A program made the translations under genes and the position numbers. A DNA stretch of 64,000 nt from the sequence record OR496884.1. The stretch is one strand, 5' to 3'. Below, one piece after another: positions 16,404-55,316 of the stretch; position 1 is the first letter of the stretch; each line of letters opens with the position of its first letter. Under the pieces are notes generated by a model. That model saw only the letters and a list, made by a program, of their open reading frames with translations, was not told the DNA's origin and searched no databases.

Positions 16404-19322
16404 ATGGACTTTTCAGTTCTTGAAAAATATGCAAATAACCCTAGCCGGATTATTCCAATTATTTTTAATGGAATAGAGCAAGCGGCTGATGTCGGGGGAG
16501 GACAAATTAATGCAACAGGTCATCCTTTTTCTTATGCTATTGATTTGATCATTGGTACTAATTACAGTTTCATTAGTAGGCTAGGTGATAGCACAGCAAA
16601 AACTTATCAATCTCACGCTCGTAATTTGCAAGACTTATCTAAAGTAATGAGTGATGAAGATTGGGTGGGTGTCTTTTCAGAACCAAGCGGTGAAACCATT
16701 CGTTGGATCATTGGAATTGAGACATTAGAAAAAATAGCAAAAGACTTTATTGAACAAGATGGCGCTTTAGTTAACACCTATAAGAAATTGGAACTTCCGC
16801 CTGATACCCAGTTTTTTGTAGCCGGGATCCCCTTCCTGCTTGAAAATCCAGTTGAAATTAGGATTATGGAACATGGGGGTATTCAAGTCGTTTACGACAG
16901 TAGTTACAACTCCCCATTTAAACCGTTAACAGATAACTCCCCAGATCGAGAGATTATTCAAATTAATGGTTCTAGCAAACTTGCAATACACCTGCCTGTA
17001 AGACAACTGGAAATTAAAGAATATCCTAGTCGTCCGGTTAACGTGACTTCAGGGTATCGTGAAACAATTACATTTAATGATAAGTTGTTTGGGATACGGG
17101 CATTTATAACTCCGGATGGTTCTAACACTCGTCAAGAACTTTCTATTGTTTATAACAATGAAATTTTTGATCCGAATCAACCAACACTTGTCATCGACAT
17201 GATTGACGATAATAATTTTCAAGCAAGTATTCCAACCGTTTACCTGCAAAATGAAACTGCATTAGGTCGTTTGACTATTTTGACATACACGACTAGAGGT
17301 GCACTTTATCAAGATCTATCAACGCTAAGAACTCAAGAACATACAGTTGCATATTACGACTATCGTAATGAAAAGGGTAAGCTTGGAACATATTCCGAAG
17401 AATTGCGTAATGTTAATGAAGTCTTGGTGGACAGTCTTACACCTATCACTGGCGGTAAGAACGGATCAAGCTTTGAAGAAATAAAGAACATGGTGATATA
17501 CGGTTATCGTAGACGCCAGATACCTATTTCTAATAGTGATTTCAGTCAAGCGTTGTCACGTGCTGGATTTGATAATGCAAAATCAATTGACACCGTAAGT
17601 CGTCGAATTTTTAGAACAACTAAAAATCTTCCTATTCAGGAAAATAAGTTGTTTGAAGGAGATGACGTCGCGCGTTTTAATAGCTCTATCGGAACTTACA
17701 CAGGTAGTACGTTAACTTCTATCGAGGAACTGGTTGGTACCGGTAACGCAATCGACAACGGTAGACGTATCACAATCTTGCGTGGTTGTGTTTATGACAT
17801 CACCGAACAAACTCCAAGGCTGGTTCCGTTATACGAAATTAATGCACTAAAGAACGCCAGCAATCAAGTTAAAATAGATACCATGGGTAATCACTCAATG
17901 GTGTACCTTCCTTTCATGTATGTTATTGATATCACTAATGACAGGGCAGAGGTAAGATGTTATCGCGTAGCCAAACCAGAAATACGGTATCAAACATTCC
18001 GTTATGAAAATGCAACACTTGGAATGCAAGTTTCTGTTGGGTCCATTAATATTGTTTCTGATAATGATGGTTACACTATTTCTTTGGAAACTAAATCAAC
18101 AGATACCTATAAGCAGTTGGCTAATGAACTTGTTGGTATTCAGTTAAGTTTTAGTGTGGAAGGTTCTACAGCACCAGCAGTGATGAAAGGGACACTATTG
18201 GGTAAAACGGCTGAAGGCGAACGTGTTTTCCAGTTCAAGATACCGAGTCGATTTGATGTTGATGCGCTTGACACAATAGATCTTAAAAACTTTAATCAAT
18301 TTGGAAGACCTCAAGACACTGTTCGGGTGAATTTGGAAGAGACAGCTAATTTCATATTTACTTACAGTGGTGATGGATTAGCTTTAAAATCCGCTACAGA
18401 TTTTAAAATTGATCAGACGCTTTTTAATAATATCACAATTGCTATCATTGAAACAGAATACAAGTTGACTTTTGGTCAAACGTTAAACAGTCTGTATACT
18501 CGTATTCGACCGATGGTAGGTGAAGCACAGTACGAGAAGTATTTACAAGGTGTTCCTGAAACCTATCTCGATGACACGTTTGTTTACGAAAATGGTAAAC
18601 TAAAGATCGTTGACGGAAAGGCAGTAATTGAACATCGCAAAGGTGAAGTCGTTTATAATACGGATGGTTCAATCAGATGGAAGCATTTGGCAGGAACTAC
18701 TGTTTATGACGAAAACGGTGAACCAGTATTGCTTAAACCTCGTGAACTTAAATACCATTGGGATTTCATTGGTTTTGATTTCAACTATCTGTTAAGCGAA
18801 GATGACTATGACGGTGATTATGTAACGTTAGTAGAAGACTTCTTTGCCGAACAGGTTGATAGCGAAGTTATTGAGTTTAATAAGAAAACACTTGATGAAA
18901 CAAAGATTGTTTTCAAACCTCGATCCACTATGGGGTTCACACAAGTTATTCTTAATGAAAACATTACCAAAACAATTCGAACTGATATTCGTTTAGCAGT
19001 GACCTATTACTTGACAACAGAAGGTATGAGTAACGAAGATTTGAAACAGTCTTTGAAAAATAATACTCATAAAGTTTCCAATGAACAACTTTCAAAAGGG
19101 ACTTTCTCTGTTAGTGAGTTGACTAACCAATTAAGAACTGGTGACGCCGTAGCTGTTAAAGTTACTGCAACAGCAGGGATTGATAATGTTGATGTTATCA
19201 CTAACATCGATGAAACAAACGGTTTTTCAATTCGTAAAGTATTGGATCAAACATCTGACCGTCTGTTAACAATTAAAGAGGATATAGAGATTACTTTTAA
19301 AGCTCACATTCAAAATAAATAA
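16404..19322 (+). CDS. Baseplate wedge protein (T4 gp6 / baseplate J-like; phiKZ gp87-like)
   Basis: 972 aa; ITGGKNGSSFEEIK...RRQIPISNSDF resembles the GG.D.ES.EE.R...AVT..DY baseplate-J signature. Confidence 0.7.
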   Translation: MDFSVLEKYANNPSRIIPIIFNGIEQAADVGGGQINATGHPFSYAIDLIIGTNYSFISRLGDSTAKTYQSHARNLQDLSKVMSDEDWVGVFSEPSGETIRWIIGIETLEKIAKDFIEQDGALVNTYKKLELPPDTQFFVAGIPFLLENPVEIRIMEHGGIQVVYDSSYNSPFKPLTDNSPDREIIQINGSSKLAIHLPVRQLEIKEYPSRPVNVTSGYRETITFNDKLFGIRAFITPDGSNTRQELSIVYNNEIFDPNQPTLVIDMIDDNNFQASIPTVYLQNETALGRLTILTYTTRGALYQDLSTLRTQEHTVAYYDYRNEKGKLGTYSEELRNVNEVLVDSLTPITGGKNGSSFEEIKNMVIYGYRRRQIPISNSDFSQALSRAGFDNAKSIDTVSRRIFRTTKNLPIQENKLFEGDDVARFNSSIGTYTGSTLTSIEELVGTGNAIDNGRRITILRGCVYDITEQTPRLVPLYEINALKNASNQVKIDTMGNHSMVYLPFMYVIDITNDRAEVRCYRVAKPEIRYQTFRYENATLGMQVSVGSINIVSDNDGYTISLETKSTDTYKQLANELVGIQLSFSVEGSTAPAVMKGTLLGKTAEGERVFQFKIPSRFDVDALDTIDLKNFNQFGRPQDTVRVNLEETANFIFTYSGDGLALKSATDFKIDQTLFNNITIAIIETEYKLTFGQTLNSLYTRIRPMVGEAQYEKYLQGVPETYLDDTFVYENGKLKIVDGKAVIEHRKGEVVYNTDGSIRWKHLAGTTVYDENGEPVLLKPRELKYHWDFIGFDFNYLLSEDDYDGDYVTLVEDFFAEQVDSEVIEFNKKTLDETKIVFKPRSTMGFTQVILNENITKTIRTDIRLAVTYYLTTEGMSNEDLKQSLKNNTHKVSNEQLSKGTFSVSELTNQLRTGDAVAVKVTATAGIDNVDVITNIDETNGFSIRKVLDQTSDRLLTIKEDIEITFKAHIQNK

Positions 19323-51346: not shown

Positions 51347-51826
51347 TTAAACCTTACATTTATTCCATGTCTCTCGACATAGTTTAATTGTTTTAGGGAA
51401 CAGATCTTTTTCCCACATCTTATTAAGAATCCGATAACCTATTTCGGTTGATGATCCGTAGTTAAGAGAAATGTGTAATTTTAATTCTGGGAAACTGTGT
51501 TCAAATCCAAGCTCTTGAAGTTCTTTAAAACGTCGCTGTATCGCATCAGATTCAAGAACTAATGCCAATGCGTAGTAATTCCCATTTGGATTACCCATTT
51601 TCTCAAAACCGATTACATTGGCAGTATAGACGGTATTATTAATTCCAGGATCAATCTCAGGATCACGTTTGTCATACATCAATGTCGCATGTATTTCATT
51701 TCCTGAAAGATTAACCATTTCCCATTTTTCTTCTTCCGGGAATTCATTAAGGAATTTGCTAACAGCAACATAAATATCAGAAATTGATTTAACGTCAACA
51801 CACAGTGACGAGTACCCCATTCCCAT
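51347..51826 (-). CDS. 2H phosphoesterase, Acb1 (T4 57B)-like
   Basis: Two HxT/S motifs (IHATLMY, LHISLNY), second preceded by GFEHSFPE; ~159 aa. Confidence 0.75.
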   Translation of the reverse strand: MGMGYSSLCVDVKSISDIYVAVSKFLNEFPEEEKWEMVNLSGNEIHATLMYDKRDPEIDPGINNTVYTANVIGFEKMGNPNGNYYALALVLESDAIQRRFKELQELGFEHSFPELKLHISLNYGSSTEIGYRILNKMWEKDLFPKTIKLCRETWNKCKV

Positions 51827-52158
51827 TATGCTTTCTCCGTATCGTATACGTTTCTTTCTTTGCGGTCTTCTATTCTAGTGTTTAATGCAAAGAGTGCTGA
51901 CTTCAAACCATCCAAAGCAATATCATTGTGCTGACATTTAAATTGGTTTTGATTGAATTTATCTAATCGATAAATACACATCGCAATGACAGCTTCCAAT
52001 GTAACGCCGTTGACACCAATTACCGGAGAACCATTTTGAAAACATATTTTACCCAATTCATTTTGTTGATTATCTAAAGCAACAAAATCGTTAATTGTCC
52101 CAGAGCGAATAATTGTACATATATCATCAGTGTGGATAATTTCAGTTGTCAATTCCAT
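51826..52158 (-). CDS. Tad1-like nucleotide-signal sponge protein
   Basis: FQNG...GVNG...E......RL..F....F.C..N..AL....A...L..RIEDRKERNV pattern; ORF-track start 52206 lies in a hairpin, ATG 52158 preferred. Confidence 0.65.
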   Translation of the reverse strand: MELTTEIIHTDDICTIIRSGTINDFVALDNQQNELGKICFQNGSPVIGVNGVTLEAVIAMCIYRLDKFNQNQFKCQHNDIALDGLKSALFALNTRIEDRKERNVYDTEKA

Positions 52159-52191
52159 TTTAAAATCCAAATAAAAAATAGTTGTAAGTAA

Positions 52192-52220
52192 AGAGGTAAC
52201 TACCAATGGTAGTTACCTCT
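52192..52220. terminator. Hairpin after 52226-52900
   Basis: 13-bp stem agaggtaactacc/ggtagttacctct. Confidence 0.7.
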
Positions 52221-52225
52221 CGCTA

Positions 52226-52900
52226 TTAATCCCCGCTTTCAGCTTCTTCTAATGCTTTTCTTCGTTGTTCCAATACTTCTAGAGCTTCCTCGTTGTTTAG
52301 ACGATTTTCACCCATGATGTTAGTTGGATCAAACAGTTCATTTGCAAGATGCAAATTAGAAGCTTGCCACGTTCTAAAAATATCAATCCTTTCTTTAACA
52401 GAAAGTCTAACAAAGTCATCACGATTAGTTAGGTATTGTGTCCGTTCAATAATCCCGTCATCGTTCAGACGATTAAGTCCATCTACTGCTTTGTTATAAA
52501 AATAGTTATCACGACCAAGTCCAGTACAGTAACTAGAAAACTCGTCATCATAACCACTAATATGACCGGTCTCATAAAGTCCCATCATCATGGGGTTGGC
52601 CATAATGTAGTTTCTCATGAACCCAACAGCTTGTTGTTGATATTTCAGATCACTGAGATACCCGATTTCAAAACGACCTACGTAGTAGCCGTCTTTACCA
52701 ACTCGGTTAGAAAATTCCCACATACGAGAGTTCATGAATTTCTCGTGAGACTTCTTAACACTATCAATAGCACCTGATAGCCAACCTGTCAGATTACTAA
52801 ACTGGTTATAAATTCCCCCCATGTAACTATTGTAAGAAGCGGCAGCGTTTTCTGACATAGCGCCACCACAACCATACATAAAAGCGCTGGTTGCATTCAC
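52226..52900 (-). CDS. Conserved core protein following nvRNAP beta-prime (phiKZ gp59/Imp3 position, tentative)
   Basis: 224 aa, GTG start 4 nt after the exon-3 stop; synteny only. Confidence 0.5.
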   Translation of the reverse strand: MNATSAFMYGCGGAMSENAAASYNSYMGGIYNQFSNLTGWLSGAIDSVKKSHEKFMNSRMWEFSNRVGKDGYYVGRFEIGYLSDLKYQQQAVGFMRNYIMANPMMMGLYETGHISGYDDEFSSYCTGLGRDNYFYNKAVDGLNRLNDDGIIERTQYLTNRDDFVRLSVKERIDIFRTWQASNLHLANELFDPTNIMGENRLNNEEALEVLEQRRKALEEAESGD

Positions 52901-52903
52901 TTA

Positions 52904-55187
52904 CTAATCCTCTTGTATGGGTTCATCCAATAACAATGCGTTGTAATTCAATAAATTTGTTTTTGTTGCTGTTGCAAAACGACTTGTCTTAAACAGGCGG
53001 TTTGGATCCAACATTTGATGATGGCCAAAAGAACTATACGCCTGAATTCGACTAATCAGATCTGGCAACATAATGCAATACATTTGGTCCTAACACATTG
53101 TAACGCTTCACAGCGGCTTTAGTTGTTCGCTAAACAACATTCCGATACTTTCATACCGGTTGAGATCATATCTTCAAAACTACATCCTTGTAGTTTGCCT
53201 ACCGTTAACCCAAGCTTTTGGGTACATGATCGTTGAACACATCGTAGATTTATATCTAGGACTTCGTTGCTGATTGCCCATTATAATTTCTAACCCTTAG
53301 CACCCAATCTTCCAAGACTAGGTTATTAAGCATAGGTCATTTCTTTGTTTCTTTCTACCTTTCGGTAACATTCACGCTCACCCTCTCAGGTCACGTTGTA
53401 GTACAAAGAACTTTAGGGGTTTCCAGCAGTTAGATAGGTTTAACGACGGCAACCAAATTTTACCGTCAAAGTCTGCCATATACATTGTCCACTTAAGTGG
53501 TTTTCACCGATTGCGCTAATTCGGCATTCCGATAGTCTCCTACCGGTTGAGAGTACATCTTTCAGGTTCTAACAAAAGTTAGCCCGTCCCCACGTTCGGA
53601 TCGCGACATGATCCACTTACTCGTTGAGCACACTTCCTATCCATTCTCACGAATGTACTTAGAAGCTTCGCTGCTGATTGACTCTATTCAATTCTTTTTA
53701 AACCACACCATATACCGTTTCCAGTTCCGTTTTGGTGAATTGACCTAACAAGTTCGTTCCAGCAATTAGAGGGGTTTTACTTCGGCACAGAGTCTACCGA
53801 ATTCTTTTACAACTGTTATTGGAATACGGATTGATTTATCTTCAACGTCCCTATTAAACTTCAAAAAGAACGTTCGAGCTGAAAGATATTGGATAGAAGG
53901 ATTTCGACCAGCGATCGCCATTGCATACTGGTTTGTCTCTATCCAATCAAAGAACTCCTCAATTACTGGATGACGGTAATTGGCAGCGCTCCGAATGATT
54001 TCTTTTGCTTTTAATGGACTATAACCTTTTACTCGGTACAACCAGTTTGACAAATGTTTATCATAACACGTTATACCGTACAGCCAAGGCACTACAATTG
54101 TATCAGATCGACAAACACCAGATTCACCAGTAATGATAGAACGACCCGTCATAGGAAGTTTACCAGCACCAGCATGATAACGGATCATTCCTTTCTTCTT
54201 AAACACCACCGCTTCCATCACCTTATACATCACGGCTCGGAGTTTGGTAAAATGTTTACCCATTAATGTTCCGTTTTCTTCCGAACGAATGTCGTAAGCA
54301 GGAAACATATCAGCAATGGTAAAAAAGAATTTATCCAGGTCTGTCTTTTCTTTATTGATGTAACGATCACGTTGGTCGCTTTCAATAATGGTCGTTATTT
54401 TATTTGGTATTGGGAAATATTGAGAAACAGCAAGATGTTTAAACTTGTTCCAGAATCGGGAATAATGTTCCCTGGAACGCTCGTCTACATCTAGAATACC
54501 ACAAAGATCTTGGTTAACAGATGCATCAATAATTAAATCGATGTTTTCAATAAATTCGTTATAACCAAATTCAAGACCTAGTGTATCTCTAAACGCTTCT
54601 ATTTTACATGCTATTTTAAACGCCGTGTTGGTAGGATCTCTAAACCGTTTTTCTTTTCTAAGATCACTGTTAATCCAATATTCCACCAGATTAACTTTTG
54701 GTGTTTTGGTATTTAAGTTATCAAAGAAAACTTTACATATAGATGGATTAAGAAACCCTGCTACTTTATCAGGTGTTTTTAGCCATACTTTTGTTTCTAT
54801 TTTATCAACTAATGGCTTAGTGACAGAGTGTCCGCAATCTTCACAAACAACATTCATATCCAAATAAATGTTGGATCGATACTTTTTACATTCGCATGAT
54901 GCTACTGTATCAAAACAGTTTCCTTCATACTCCGTTCTAAGCAAGCTGATAATACGGTCTCGATCTTCTTCCTTATTAAAATCGAAATCGTTTAAATAAA
55001 TAGGTGTGTTGACAGAACAATTGTGTCTGGCATCATAGTCATCAAAATCCGGATACAAAGCTTTATAAAAACTTTGATCGTCCTTTGGAATTTTAAAACC
55101 AGTTTCTTTAATGATTTTATTAAAGATAGCCGACGGCAACAGGTTTTCTACTTCGTAAGGTTTTAAGATTTCCGCTAAAGTAGGCAC
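52904..55187 (-). CDS. nvRNAP catalytic beta-prime N-terminal subunit (phiKZ gp55-like), spliced join(55187..53796, 53476..53462, 53089..52904), 530 aa
   Basis: Zn site CECKK...CEDCG, RNPSI; splicing restores KEFG-ADFDG-DQMYC with the DFDGD Mg-binding motif. Confidence 0.93.
53090..53461 (-). mobile_element. Group I intron 2 (372 nt, IA-like, no ORF)
   Basis: Exon GACGGU pairs IGS GCCGUC with U-G at the splice site; P10 GACCAAAU/AUUUGGUU; P AACUGCUGGAAA, Q AAUCAGCAAC, P7 GAUCA/UGAUC; ends in G. Confidence 0.93.
53462..53476 (-). other. 15-nt micro-exon GCAGACTTTGACGGT encoding ADFDG
   Basis: Reads in frame between two group I introns and completes the RNAP active-site motif. Confidence 0.93.
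53477..53795 (-). mobile_element. Group I intron 1 (319 nt, IA-like, no ORF)
   Basis: Exon UUCGGU pairs IGS GCCGAA with U-G at the splice site; P10 GCAGA/UCUGU; P AAUUGCUGGAA, Q AAUCAGCAGC, P7 GAGUA/UACUC; ends in G. Confidence 0.93.
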
Positions 55188-55243: not shown

Positions 55244-55270
55244 AAAAATAAAATAGAAAACATAAAAACA

Positions 55271-55298
55271 CAGAGGGTGGGTTTTACCCCACCCTCTG
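55271..55298. terminator. Terminator after chimallin
   Basis: 11-bp stem cagagggtggg/cccaccctctg followed by U-rich run on minus strand. Confidence 0.8.
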
Positions 55299-55316
55299 CA
55301 TAATTACATTTTGATA

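Follow-up and report, generated by a model that had tools for sequence, protein, structure and literature searches.

Two group I introns and a candidate 15-nucleotide micro-exon in the non-virion RNA polymerase gene of Aeromonas phage AerS_266

How is the catalytic loop of a phage RNA polymerase encoded when the annotated open reading frame (ORF) ends before reaching it? This question was raised by a minus-strand gene at positions 52,904 to 55,187 of a 64,000-nucleotide (nt) stretch of record OR496884.1 (the window). At 100% identity, the region matches Aeromonas phage AerS_266 (OR496884), a 244-kb jumbo phage of the genus Chaoshanvirus that encodes chimallin and is a plaque-forming isolate (PMC10673249). 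GenBank's minus-strand order is chimallin, a 473-amino-acid (aa) "RNA polymerase, PhiKZ-like", a 682-nt gap, a 59-aa hypothetical protein and a further gene. The GenBank record of AerS_266 marks no intron at the locus, and introns are not mentioned in the genome paper. The gene encodes the N-terminal part of the beta' subunit of the non-virion RNA polymerase (nvRNAP beta'-N). It is very probably split by two independent group I introns that belong to one family and lack an endonuclease, set 15 nt apart around the codons for A-D-F-D-G, with double splicing restoring the subunit.

Coding frame and micro-exon

Exon 1 (53796..55187, minus strand) comprised 464 codons ending in VVKEFG. It was delimited by its ORF, by the PHROG 2987 RNA polymerase profile (E=4e-108 for the 464 residues to EFG, positions 3-415 of 478), by the solved phiKZ non-virion polymerase (PDB 7ogp chain A, E=8.5e-24) and by tblastn. 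Read directly on the minus strand, the exon ended GAA TTC GGT at 53796. The annotated polymerase ORF continued a further 29 nt, into intron 1, and stopped at 53766, never reaching DFDGD. Exon 3 (52904..53089, minus strand), which GenBank lists as the separate 59-aa hypothetical protein, opened GAC CAA ATG at 53089 and comprised 61 codons (DQMYCIML...IQED) closed by TAG at 52906-52904, 3 nt ahead of the next gene, whose GTG is at 52900. It aligned to PHROG 2987 positions 422-476, and the six unmatched profile positions were the place of the micro-exon. Apart from those six positions, the predicted spliced product is colinear with the PHROG 2987 family.

Uninterrupted homologues gave the same frame. 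The predicted spliced length of 530 aa (464+5+61) compared with 529 aa in AhC3_1 and 530 aa in OBP, both of which read ...KEF(N/G)ADFDGDQMY... without a break. When the intact AhC3_1 protein was searched against the locus by tblastn, residues 1-462 and 469-529 were covered and exactly the micro-exon was left out. The intronless alleles (AhC3_1, OBP and 47 IMG/VR contigs) set the junctions to the base. Judged by homology, the minus-strand gene beside chimallin is the phiKZ gp55 homologue, and so encodes nvRNAP beta'-N. It showed the features of a phiKZ-type gp55 gene: homology, chimallin upstream and a DFDGD loop, the last restored only after both splices.

The micro-exon, GCAGACTTTGACGGT (53462..53476, minus strand; 15 nt), was placed by sequence and by colinearity with intact homologues. 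It encodes A-D-F-D-G and supplies the Mg-binding loop, DFDGD, with its first two aspartates. It was the only DFDG-coding stretch in the gap when all frames were examined, and by our own arithmetic the chance of an in-phase ADFDG somewhere in a 700-nt gap is roughly 1e-4. No second DFDGD was present in any frame of the 64-kb window. A DYDGD at 18804 was considered as a paralogue and rejected, as it sits in a baseplate protein (ORF 16404-19322, plus strand, 972 aa; baseplate wedge protein, phiKZ gp87 homologue, PDB 9xqs). Only the doubly spliced mRNA is predicted to encode the 530-aa subunit with an intact EFG-ADFDG-DQM loop and the junction peptide EFGADFDGDQMYC. Unspliced RNA would yield a 473-aa protein without the Mg-binding loop, and skipping of the micro-exon would yield an in-frame product minus two aspartates.

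Structure of the two introns and predicted splicing

Intron 1 (53477..53795, minus strand) was 319 nt long, followed U 53796, ended in a terminal (omega) G at 53477 and lay between the codons G463 and A464, at the position called S1 below. Intron 2 (53090..53461, minus strand) was 372 nt long, followed U 53462, ended in a terminal G at 53090 and lay between G468 and D469, at S4. Both structures were laid out by hand, and each base pair was checked by script. P1 of intron 1 (53781..53801, minus strand) was formed by exon UUCGGU (53801-53796) with guide GCCGAA (53786-53781), and P1 of intron 2 (53445..53467, minus strand) by micro-exon GACGGU (53467-53462) with guide GCCGUC (53450-53445); in each, 6/6 positions paired with a U·G at the splice site. 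P10 of intron 1 paired UCUGU of the P1 loop (53791-53787) with GCAGA of the micro-exon (53476-53472; 5/5), and P10 of intron 2 paired AUUUGGUU (53458-53451) with GACCAAAU of exon 3 (53089-53082; 8/8). The guanosine-binding helix P7 was GAGUA (53622-53618) with UACUC (53555-53551) in intron 1 (53551..53622, minus strand) and GAUCA (53231-53227) with UGAUC (53168-53164) in intron 2 (53164..53231, minus strand), in both cases with P7.1, P3' and P8 between the two strands. Each intron had one P7.1 hairpin; extra P7.1/P7.2 hairpins between P7 and P3' mark the phage-type subgroup IA, to which the two introns may belong.

The remaining helices of intron 1 were P3, P4, P5-P5c (GAAA loop), P6-P6b (GUGA loop), P8, P9 (GAGA loop), P9.1 and P9.2. 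Intron 2 was complete from P3 to P9.2, including P8, P9 and P9.1, and had a longer P5 extension with GAGA and GAAA loops. P, Q, R and S core elements were present in both, and unconstrained minimum-free-energy folding regained most of the hand-laid helices of each; the folding z-score of intron 2 was -3.5. Neither intron contained a homing endonuclease ORF (longest internal ORF, 46 aa), and no maturase-like ORF was found in or adjoining them. As a separate observation, the P9.1 stem of intron 1 (GCCGA/UCGGU, 53506-53525) is identical in sequence to that intron's own P1 (GCCGAA/UUCGGU, 53781-53801), and relatives carry unrelated P9.1 stems around the same loop. This stem could be a P1 mimic, or the identity could be due to chance.

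Both inserts matched Rfam group I model RF00028 over the full model, intron 2 at 53496-53142 (60.7 bits, E=4e-14; gathering score 50) and intron 1 at 53878-53529 (43.3 bits, E=6e-9). These were the sole Rfam matches in the 64-kb window. In gathering (default) mode, a scan of the whole window reported nothing, and evalue mode recovered both introns. The miss in gathering mode is a filter artefact: with relaxed filters intron 2 reaches 60.7 bits against the threshold of 50. Across 13 relatives, P3, P5, P7, P7.1, P8 and P9 stayed paired despite sequence change. Distinct paired variants numbered 12 for P3 (three flagged as mis-picks), 9 for P5, 3 for P7, 11 for P7.1, 11 for P8 and 8 for P9; these are descriptive counts from an anchor-based automatic finder, with mis-picks of P3 and P8 in PS1, ACP1 and Miami. 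The P7 variants in the family were GACUA/UAGUC, GAUCA/UGAUC and GAGUA/UACUC. RNAalifold gave double changes in 23/42 pairs, over only part of the structure, since MAFFT put the P4'-P6 block in the wrong place when long and short forms of the intron were aligned.

A first-pass annotation, made from the sequence of this locus, had read the track ORF as stopping at 53766 without DFDGD and had proposed that removal of 53795-53477 and 53461-53090 adds a 61-aa exon to give 530 aa. The stop was confirmed on the minus strand, and the coordinates, exon and length agreed with the sequence and with the intact homologues (529-530 aa). Its placing of two of the catalytic aspartates on the micro-exon also stood: they are the first two of DFDGD, within ADFDG. 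Its description of introns that follow U, end in G and show P1 with the U-G pair, P10 and P/Q/R/S cores held base by base, and the absence of ORFs from the ribozymes was borne out by a longest internal ORF of 46 aa. The search with group I models that it had recommended matched both inserts (60.7 and 43.3 bits), and the intact DFDGD paralogue that it had named as contrary evidence was absent from the 64-kb window. The remark that the layout would escape standard annotation fits the GenBank record of AerS_266, which lists no intron, and the 64-kb Rfam scan, in which the default filters miss both introns.

After transcription, each ribozyme would fold and its own guide would pair with the preceding U-ending exon, which for intron 2 would be the last 6 nt of the micro-exon. 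Free guanosine would then attack each intron, and the exons would be joined using P10, for which intron 1 would take the first 5 nt of the micro-exon. Because P10 of intron 1 and P1 of intron 2 use non-overlapping ends of the micro-exon, either intron could splice first with the other's pairings intact. The homologous polymerase in phiKZ transcribes the middle and late genes (PMC10612078, PMC7618050). The first-pass statement that middle and late transcription would depend on the two splicing events follows from gp55 homology and this published phiKZ biology, and by analogy it probably applies here. As there is no other DFDGD in the window, the phage forms plaques and the phiKZ enzyme has this middle and late role, we infer that both introns must splice in vivo. 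The mechanism itself is ordinary. The arrangement most likely arose as introns homed repeatedly into the gene's best-conserved codons, and it need not be a purpose-built regulatory device.

Insertion sites, intron ancestry and known systems

Nineteen fetched loci and 51 from IMG/VR were read, and annotated phage genomes were compared by where tblastn placed exons 1 and 3. In IMG/VR, a single-protein query found no relatives and an alignment query did. Five insertion sites, all at codon boundaries (phase 0), were found in P/L-N/G-A-D-F-D-G-D, spanning 21 nt. S0, before P/L, was occupied in contigs L071-L073 and L107; S1, between N/G and A, in phiKZ, contig L069 and AerS_266; S2, between A and D, in EL, phiKp_32 and VB_ZK_P1; S3, between AD and FDG, in ZPAH34, CF8, AVP1, PS1, ACP1 and contig L055; and S4, between FDG and D, in AerS_266, pAEv1810, D3, Miami, VP4B, FishSpeaker, HHBS8_1, Serratia 2050HW, PS1, ACP1, L055 and others. 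All catalogued inserts at the locus (25/25) followed T and ended in G. I-HmuI-like HNH endonuclease genes (HNH_3 plus NUMOD) were found in relatives at S1 to S4. At S0, the first intron of contig L071 carried a 535-aa ORF, which was unclassified, and the first intron of contig L072 seemingly followed C, not U. Most IMG/VR homologues (47/51) and many isolates had no intron. Within the genus of AerS_266 (S1+S4), ZPAH34 and CF8 carried a single S3 intron; intron content therefore turns over quickly.

Two side observations concern these sites. In the Pseudomonas phages EL (L013) and HHBS8_1 (L018), the motif flanks were near-identical and HNH-bearing introns of about 1.4 kb lay at S2 in EL and at S4 in HHBS8_1, whose record gives no taxonomy. 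The glycine codon before S4 was always GGT in S4-occupied alleles, as the U·G pair requires; it was GGC, GGG or GGT in intronless alleles and GGA in the S3-only ZPAH34 and CF8. The synonymous third base of this codon may affect intron susceptibility.

Several phages carried tandem inserts. In PS1, PS2 and ACP1, S3 and S4 introns surrounded a 9-nt micro-exon, TTCGACGGT; Rfam detected both ribozymes in PS1 and ACP1, and for PS2 the tandem layout was inferred from identical spacing. Contig L055 had S3 and S4 introns around TACGACGGT, also 9 nt. In the contigs of uncultivated phage L071 (1998-2039), L072 (4857-4899), L073 (585-626) and L107 (23-65; all minus strand), tandem introns surrounded a 21-nt micro-exon encoding PNADFDG or LNADFDG. 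PhiKp_32 and VB_ZK_P1 had an S2 intron, a 12-nt micro-exon and a second insert of 311 nt that was not recognisable as group I. This S4 insert (L010:5602-5912 in phiKp_32, L011:3737-4047 in VB_ZK_P1) followed GGT, ended in G and had an S4-like start, AAACGTATTGCCGCC; it showed no conserved core blocks and gave no Rfam match even at E<=10. It is presumably removed somehow, because the gene is essential. A pattern scan of IMG/VR and JGI metagenomes for a second S1+S4 layout with a 15-nt micro-exon found none; about 41 of its 44 matches were chance ADFDG-coding stretches in unrelated genes.

The first-pass claim that single group I introns occur at this motif in some jumbo phages was substantiated by phiKZ, EL, ZPAH34, D3 and others. 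Its view of the tandem layout as unusual stood only in part. The S1+S4 form with 15 nt was found in AerS_266 alone, but tandem introns also occur in PS1, PS2, ACP1 and several metagenomic contigs, so the layout is less singular than had been held and its recurrence lowers the surprise. As in AerS_266, the two inserts in those cases and in phiKp_32 and VB_ZK_P1 flank a micro-exon coding for part of the same catalytic loop. They differ in being S3+S4, S2+S4 or S0+S4, whereas AerS_266 has S1+S4 and both its introns are without an ORF.

Aligned over at least 88% of its length, intron 2 shared 75-78% identity with S4 introns from pAEv1810 (78%), ACP1 and FishSpeaker, and in the tree it grouped with pAEv1810 and ACP1. 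By sequence comparison it is an ordinary, widespread S4 intron. It belongs with the other chimallivirus S4 introns (pAEv1810, ACP1, D3, VP4B, Miami, FishSpeaker, HHBS8_1, Serratia 2050HW), sharing the site between DFDG and D and the guide GCCGUC or a close variant. Those introns differ in mostly being the sole intron of the gene; the inserts of PS1, HHBS8_1 and Miami are long, and those of PS1 and HHBS8_1 encode HNH endonucleases.

Intron 1 had the family's conserved blocks and 3' end (ACAAUG...G), and its P9.2 hairpin came close to matching the one in the S4 intron of PS1. A maximum-likelihood tree built from the cores placed intron 1, on a long branch, with the S4 group and apart from the S1 introns of phiKZ and L069 (split support 100/99); core pairwise identities of 71-82% for all pairs were uninformative. 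Relative to the S4 consensus, the guide of intron 1 was changed from GCCGUC to GCCGAA, matching the 5' exon change from GACGGU to UUCGGU, and the S1 and S4 targets in AerS_266 both have CGGU followed by G. These features point, at moderate confidence, to colonisation of the upstream site by an S4-type intron in an event separate from the phiKZ lineage.

Another close described system is the phiKZ gene 55/gp56 intron (PHIKZ055 and PHIKZ056.1), which lies in the same gene, at the same site as intron 1, and belongs to the same broad intron family (P, Q, R and S sequences conserved). In phiKZ there is one 1372-nt intron with an HNH endonuclease, whereas intron 1 of AerS_266 is 319 nt, ORF-less, on a different family branch and accompanied by a second intron. 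In the phiKZ structures, ...KAPN (435) is followed directly by A(436)DFDGD, with the join precisely at S1 (7ogp chain A); therefore the site of intron 1 is one at which the mature protein is known to be joined. Introns in phiKZ gp55 are mentioned in PMC11512511, which cites Ceyssens 2014 and Mesyanzhinov 2002. The PhiPA3 gp210 intron (Birkholz et al. 2024, PMC11620839) is likewise a group I intron at conserved aspartate codons of a chimallivirus RNA polymerase gene; it differs in interrupting a virion polymerase beta subunit gene (gp211/209), in being single and in encoding an active HNH nickase. That endonuclease is aimed at another RNA polymerase gene and gives PhiPA3 an advantage over PhiKZ (PMC11620839), which demonstrates that elements of this kind can count when phages compete.

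Three group I introns and exon skipping are described for Twort orf142 (PMC11878797), and a small exon between two introns for the phiNIT1 ribonucleotide reductase (PMC11878797 and its reference 34). Like AerS_266, these phages have several group I introns per gene, small internal exons and possible exon skipping. They differ in that other genes of Firmicutes phages are involved, and in none of them is the small exon reported to set a catalytic motif apart. In fungal mitochondria, genes such as cox1 can have side-by-side group I introns and exons of a few nucleotides; these cases differ in being organellar, usually maturase-assisted and in unrelated genes. Group I introns at phage active-site codons, the phiKZ gp55 intron and phage genes that combine several introns, small exons and exon skipping (PMC11878797 and its reference to Twort) were already known. 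In the literature searched, no description was found of introns flanking the DFDGD codons on both sides, or of 9-21-nt micro-exons in phage genes.

Alternative readings and neighbouring features

Several points weigh against two autonomous, spliced introns. At 43.3 bits, intron 1 falls below the Rfam gathering score of 50, its folding z-score is -1.6, and its P3 has one U-U mismatch, in the only mismatched helix of that intron. Docking of helices from the same 15 nt by two ribozymes may be sterically awkward, and splicing of both introns in vivo is deduced from sequence and phage viability. The sub-threshold score and weak z-score would suit a reading in which one or both inserts are not autonomous and need a phage or host protein helper or special conditions, as would four Bastillevirinae introns excised only in infected cells and not in vitro (PMC11878797) and one long-read data set without splicing of the predicted phiKZ introns (PMC10914365). 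Several relatives that must also splice, however, score like intron 1 on RF00028. Each core is complete and has every conserved junction sequence, nothing resembling a maturase ORF was found within or beside the introns, and the phiKZ protein is nonetheless made with the spliced sequence. Dependence on a helper is considered unlikely. Far less probable still is a broken gene, whether a decaying pseudogene, a 473-aa plus 59-aa split without the catalytic loop, or removal of the 706 nt as one unit or twintron, although the GenBank annotation does split the locus into two ORFs without an intron. The codons for ADFDG are fully preserved, in phase, between two precise intron ends, and removal of 706 nt as one unit would lose two catalytic aspartates. 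The window holds no second DFDGD (the DYDGD at 18804 being in the baseplate protein), the phage is viable, and other phages share the layout, with both ribozymes recognisable. The introns are side by side, not nested: a twintron was rejected, as the coding micro-exon separates the introns and each has its own P1 and terminal G. An intein, a frameshift and a separate small protein were also rejected, given the precise U...G boundaries, the lack of an in-frame insert and the lack of a ribosome-binding site before exon 3.

A further possibility grants that the introns splice and holds that the layout is used and not just tolerated, either blocking the homing endonucleases of competitors, such as those of S2 and S3, by disrupting the sequence that they target at the catalytic codons, or tuning the amount of active polymerase through double splicing or in-frame skipping of the micro-exon. 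Related phages hold HNH endonucleases aimed at this stretch, at four sites, the PhiPA3 intron endonuclease gives an edge over PhiKZ (PMC11620839), and close relatives differ in their intron sets (AerS_266 S1+S4; ZPAH34 and CF8 S3). All the micro-exons are multiples of 3, so that skipping would be in-frame and give a subunit without the catalytic loop, and phage group I introns are known to skip exons (PMC11878797). Phase-0 sites, however, automatically make micro-exons multiples of 3. By inspection, P10 of intron 1 fits the micro-exon 5/5 and exon 3 only 2/5, which argues against skipping, and selfish accumulation accounts for the pattern without any benefit. A used layout is doubtful. Equally tentative is the proposal that the DFDGD codons are a battleground of competing jumbo phages, in which endonuclease-bearing introns are aimed at five adjacent sites and introns on both sides of the micro-exon give immunity to cutting at the sites between them, at the cost of middle and late transcription that depends on two ribozymes inside a translation-free compartment. 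As a corollary, intron 1 would descend from an S4-type intron that shifted upstream by 15 nt, first re-pairing with the repeated CGGU and later adjusting its guide.

On the preferred reading of two spliced introns, the active site of an essential enzyme would depend on two reactions catalysed by RNA, with a 15-nt substrate in common, and the locus would offer a small natural system for asking how near to each other two group I ribozymes can work and in what order. It also offers a well-resolved record of intron turnover at a homing hot spot, with endonuclease-bearing and endonuclease-free versions at several sites, and ties in with recent work in which intron endonucleases were found to mediate competition among nucleus-forming phages. 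For annotation, routine pipelines would miss these introns. No intron was annotated at the locus in the isolate genome records examined. The GenBank records L002-L013 and L017-L019 (including ZPAH34, CF8, AVP1, pAEv1810, PS1, ACP1, D3 and Miami) all gave the gene as an ORF that is cut short or runs on, with a second, small ORF downstream. In insert-bearing records that small ORF was unnamed or called a separate polymerase piece, and the catalytic aspartates fell in unannotated sequence.

Upstream of the polymerase gene, a strong terminator-like hairpin (14-bp stem followed by a T run) was found downstream of the chimallin gene at 55268..55301 (minus strand). The polymerase gene probably has its own promoter within 55267-55188. 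Past a 224-aa ORF downstream of the polymerase gene lie two genes (51347-52206, minus strand) that GenBank names as an anti-Thoeris protein and an anti-CBASS nuclease. In PHROGs, the anti-CBASS nuclease falls in 'RNA ligase' family 755 and the anti-Thoeris protein is listed as of unknown function.

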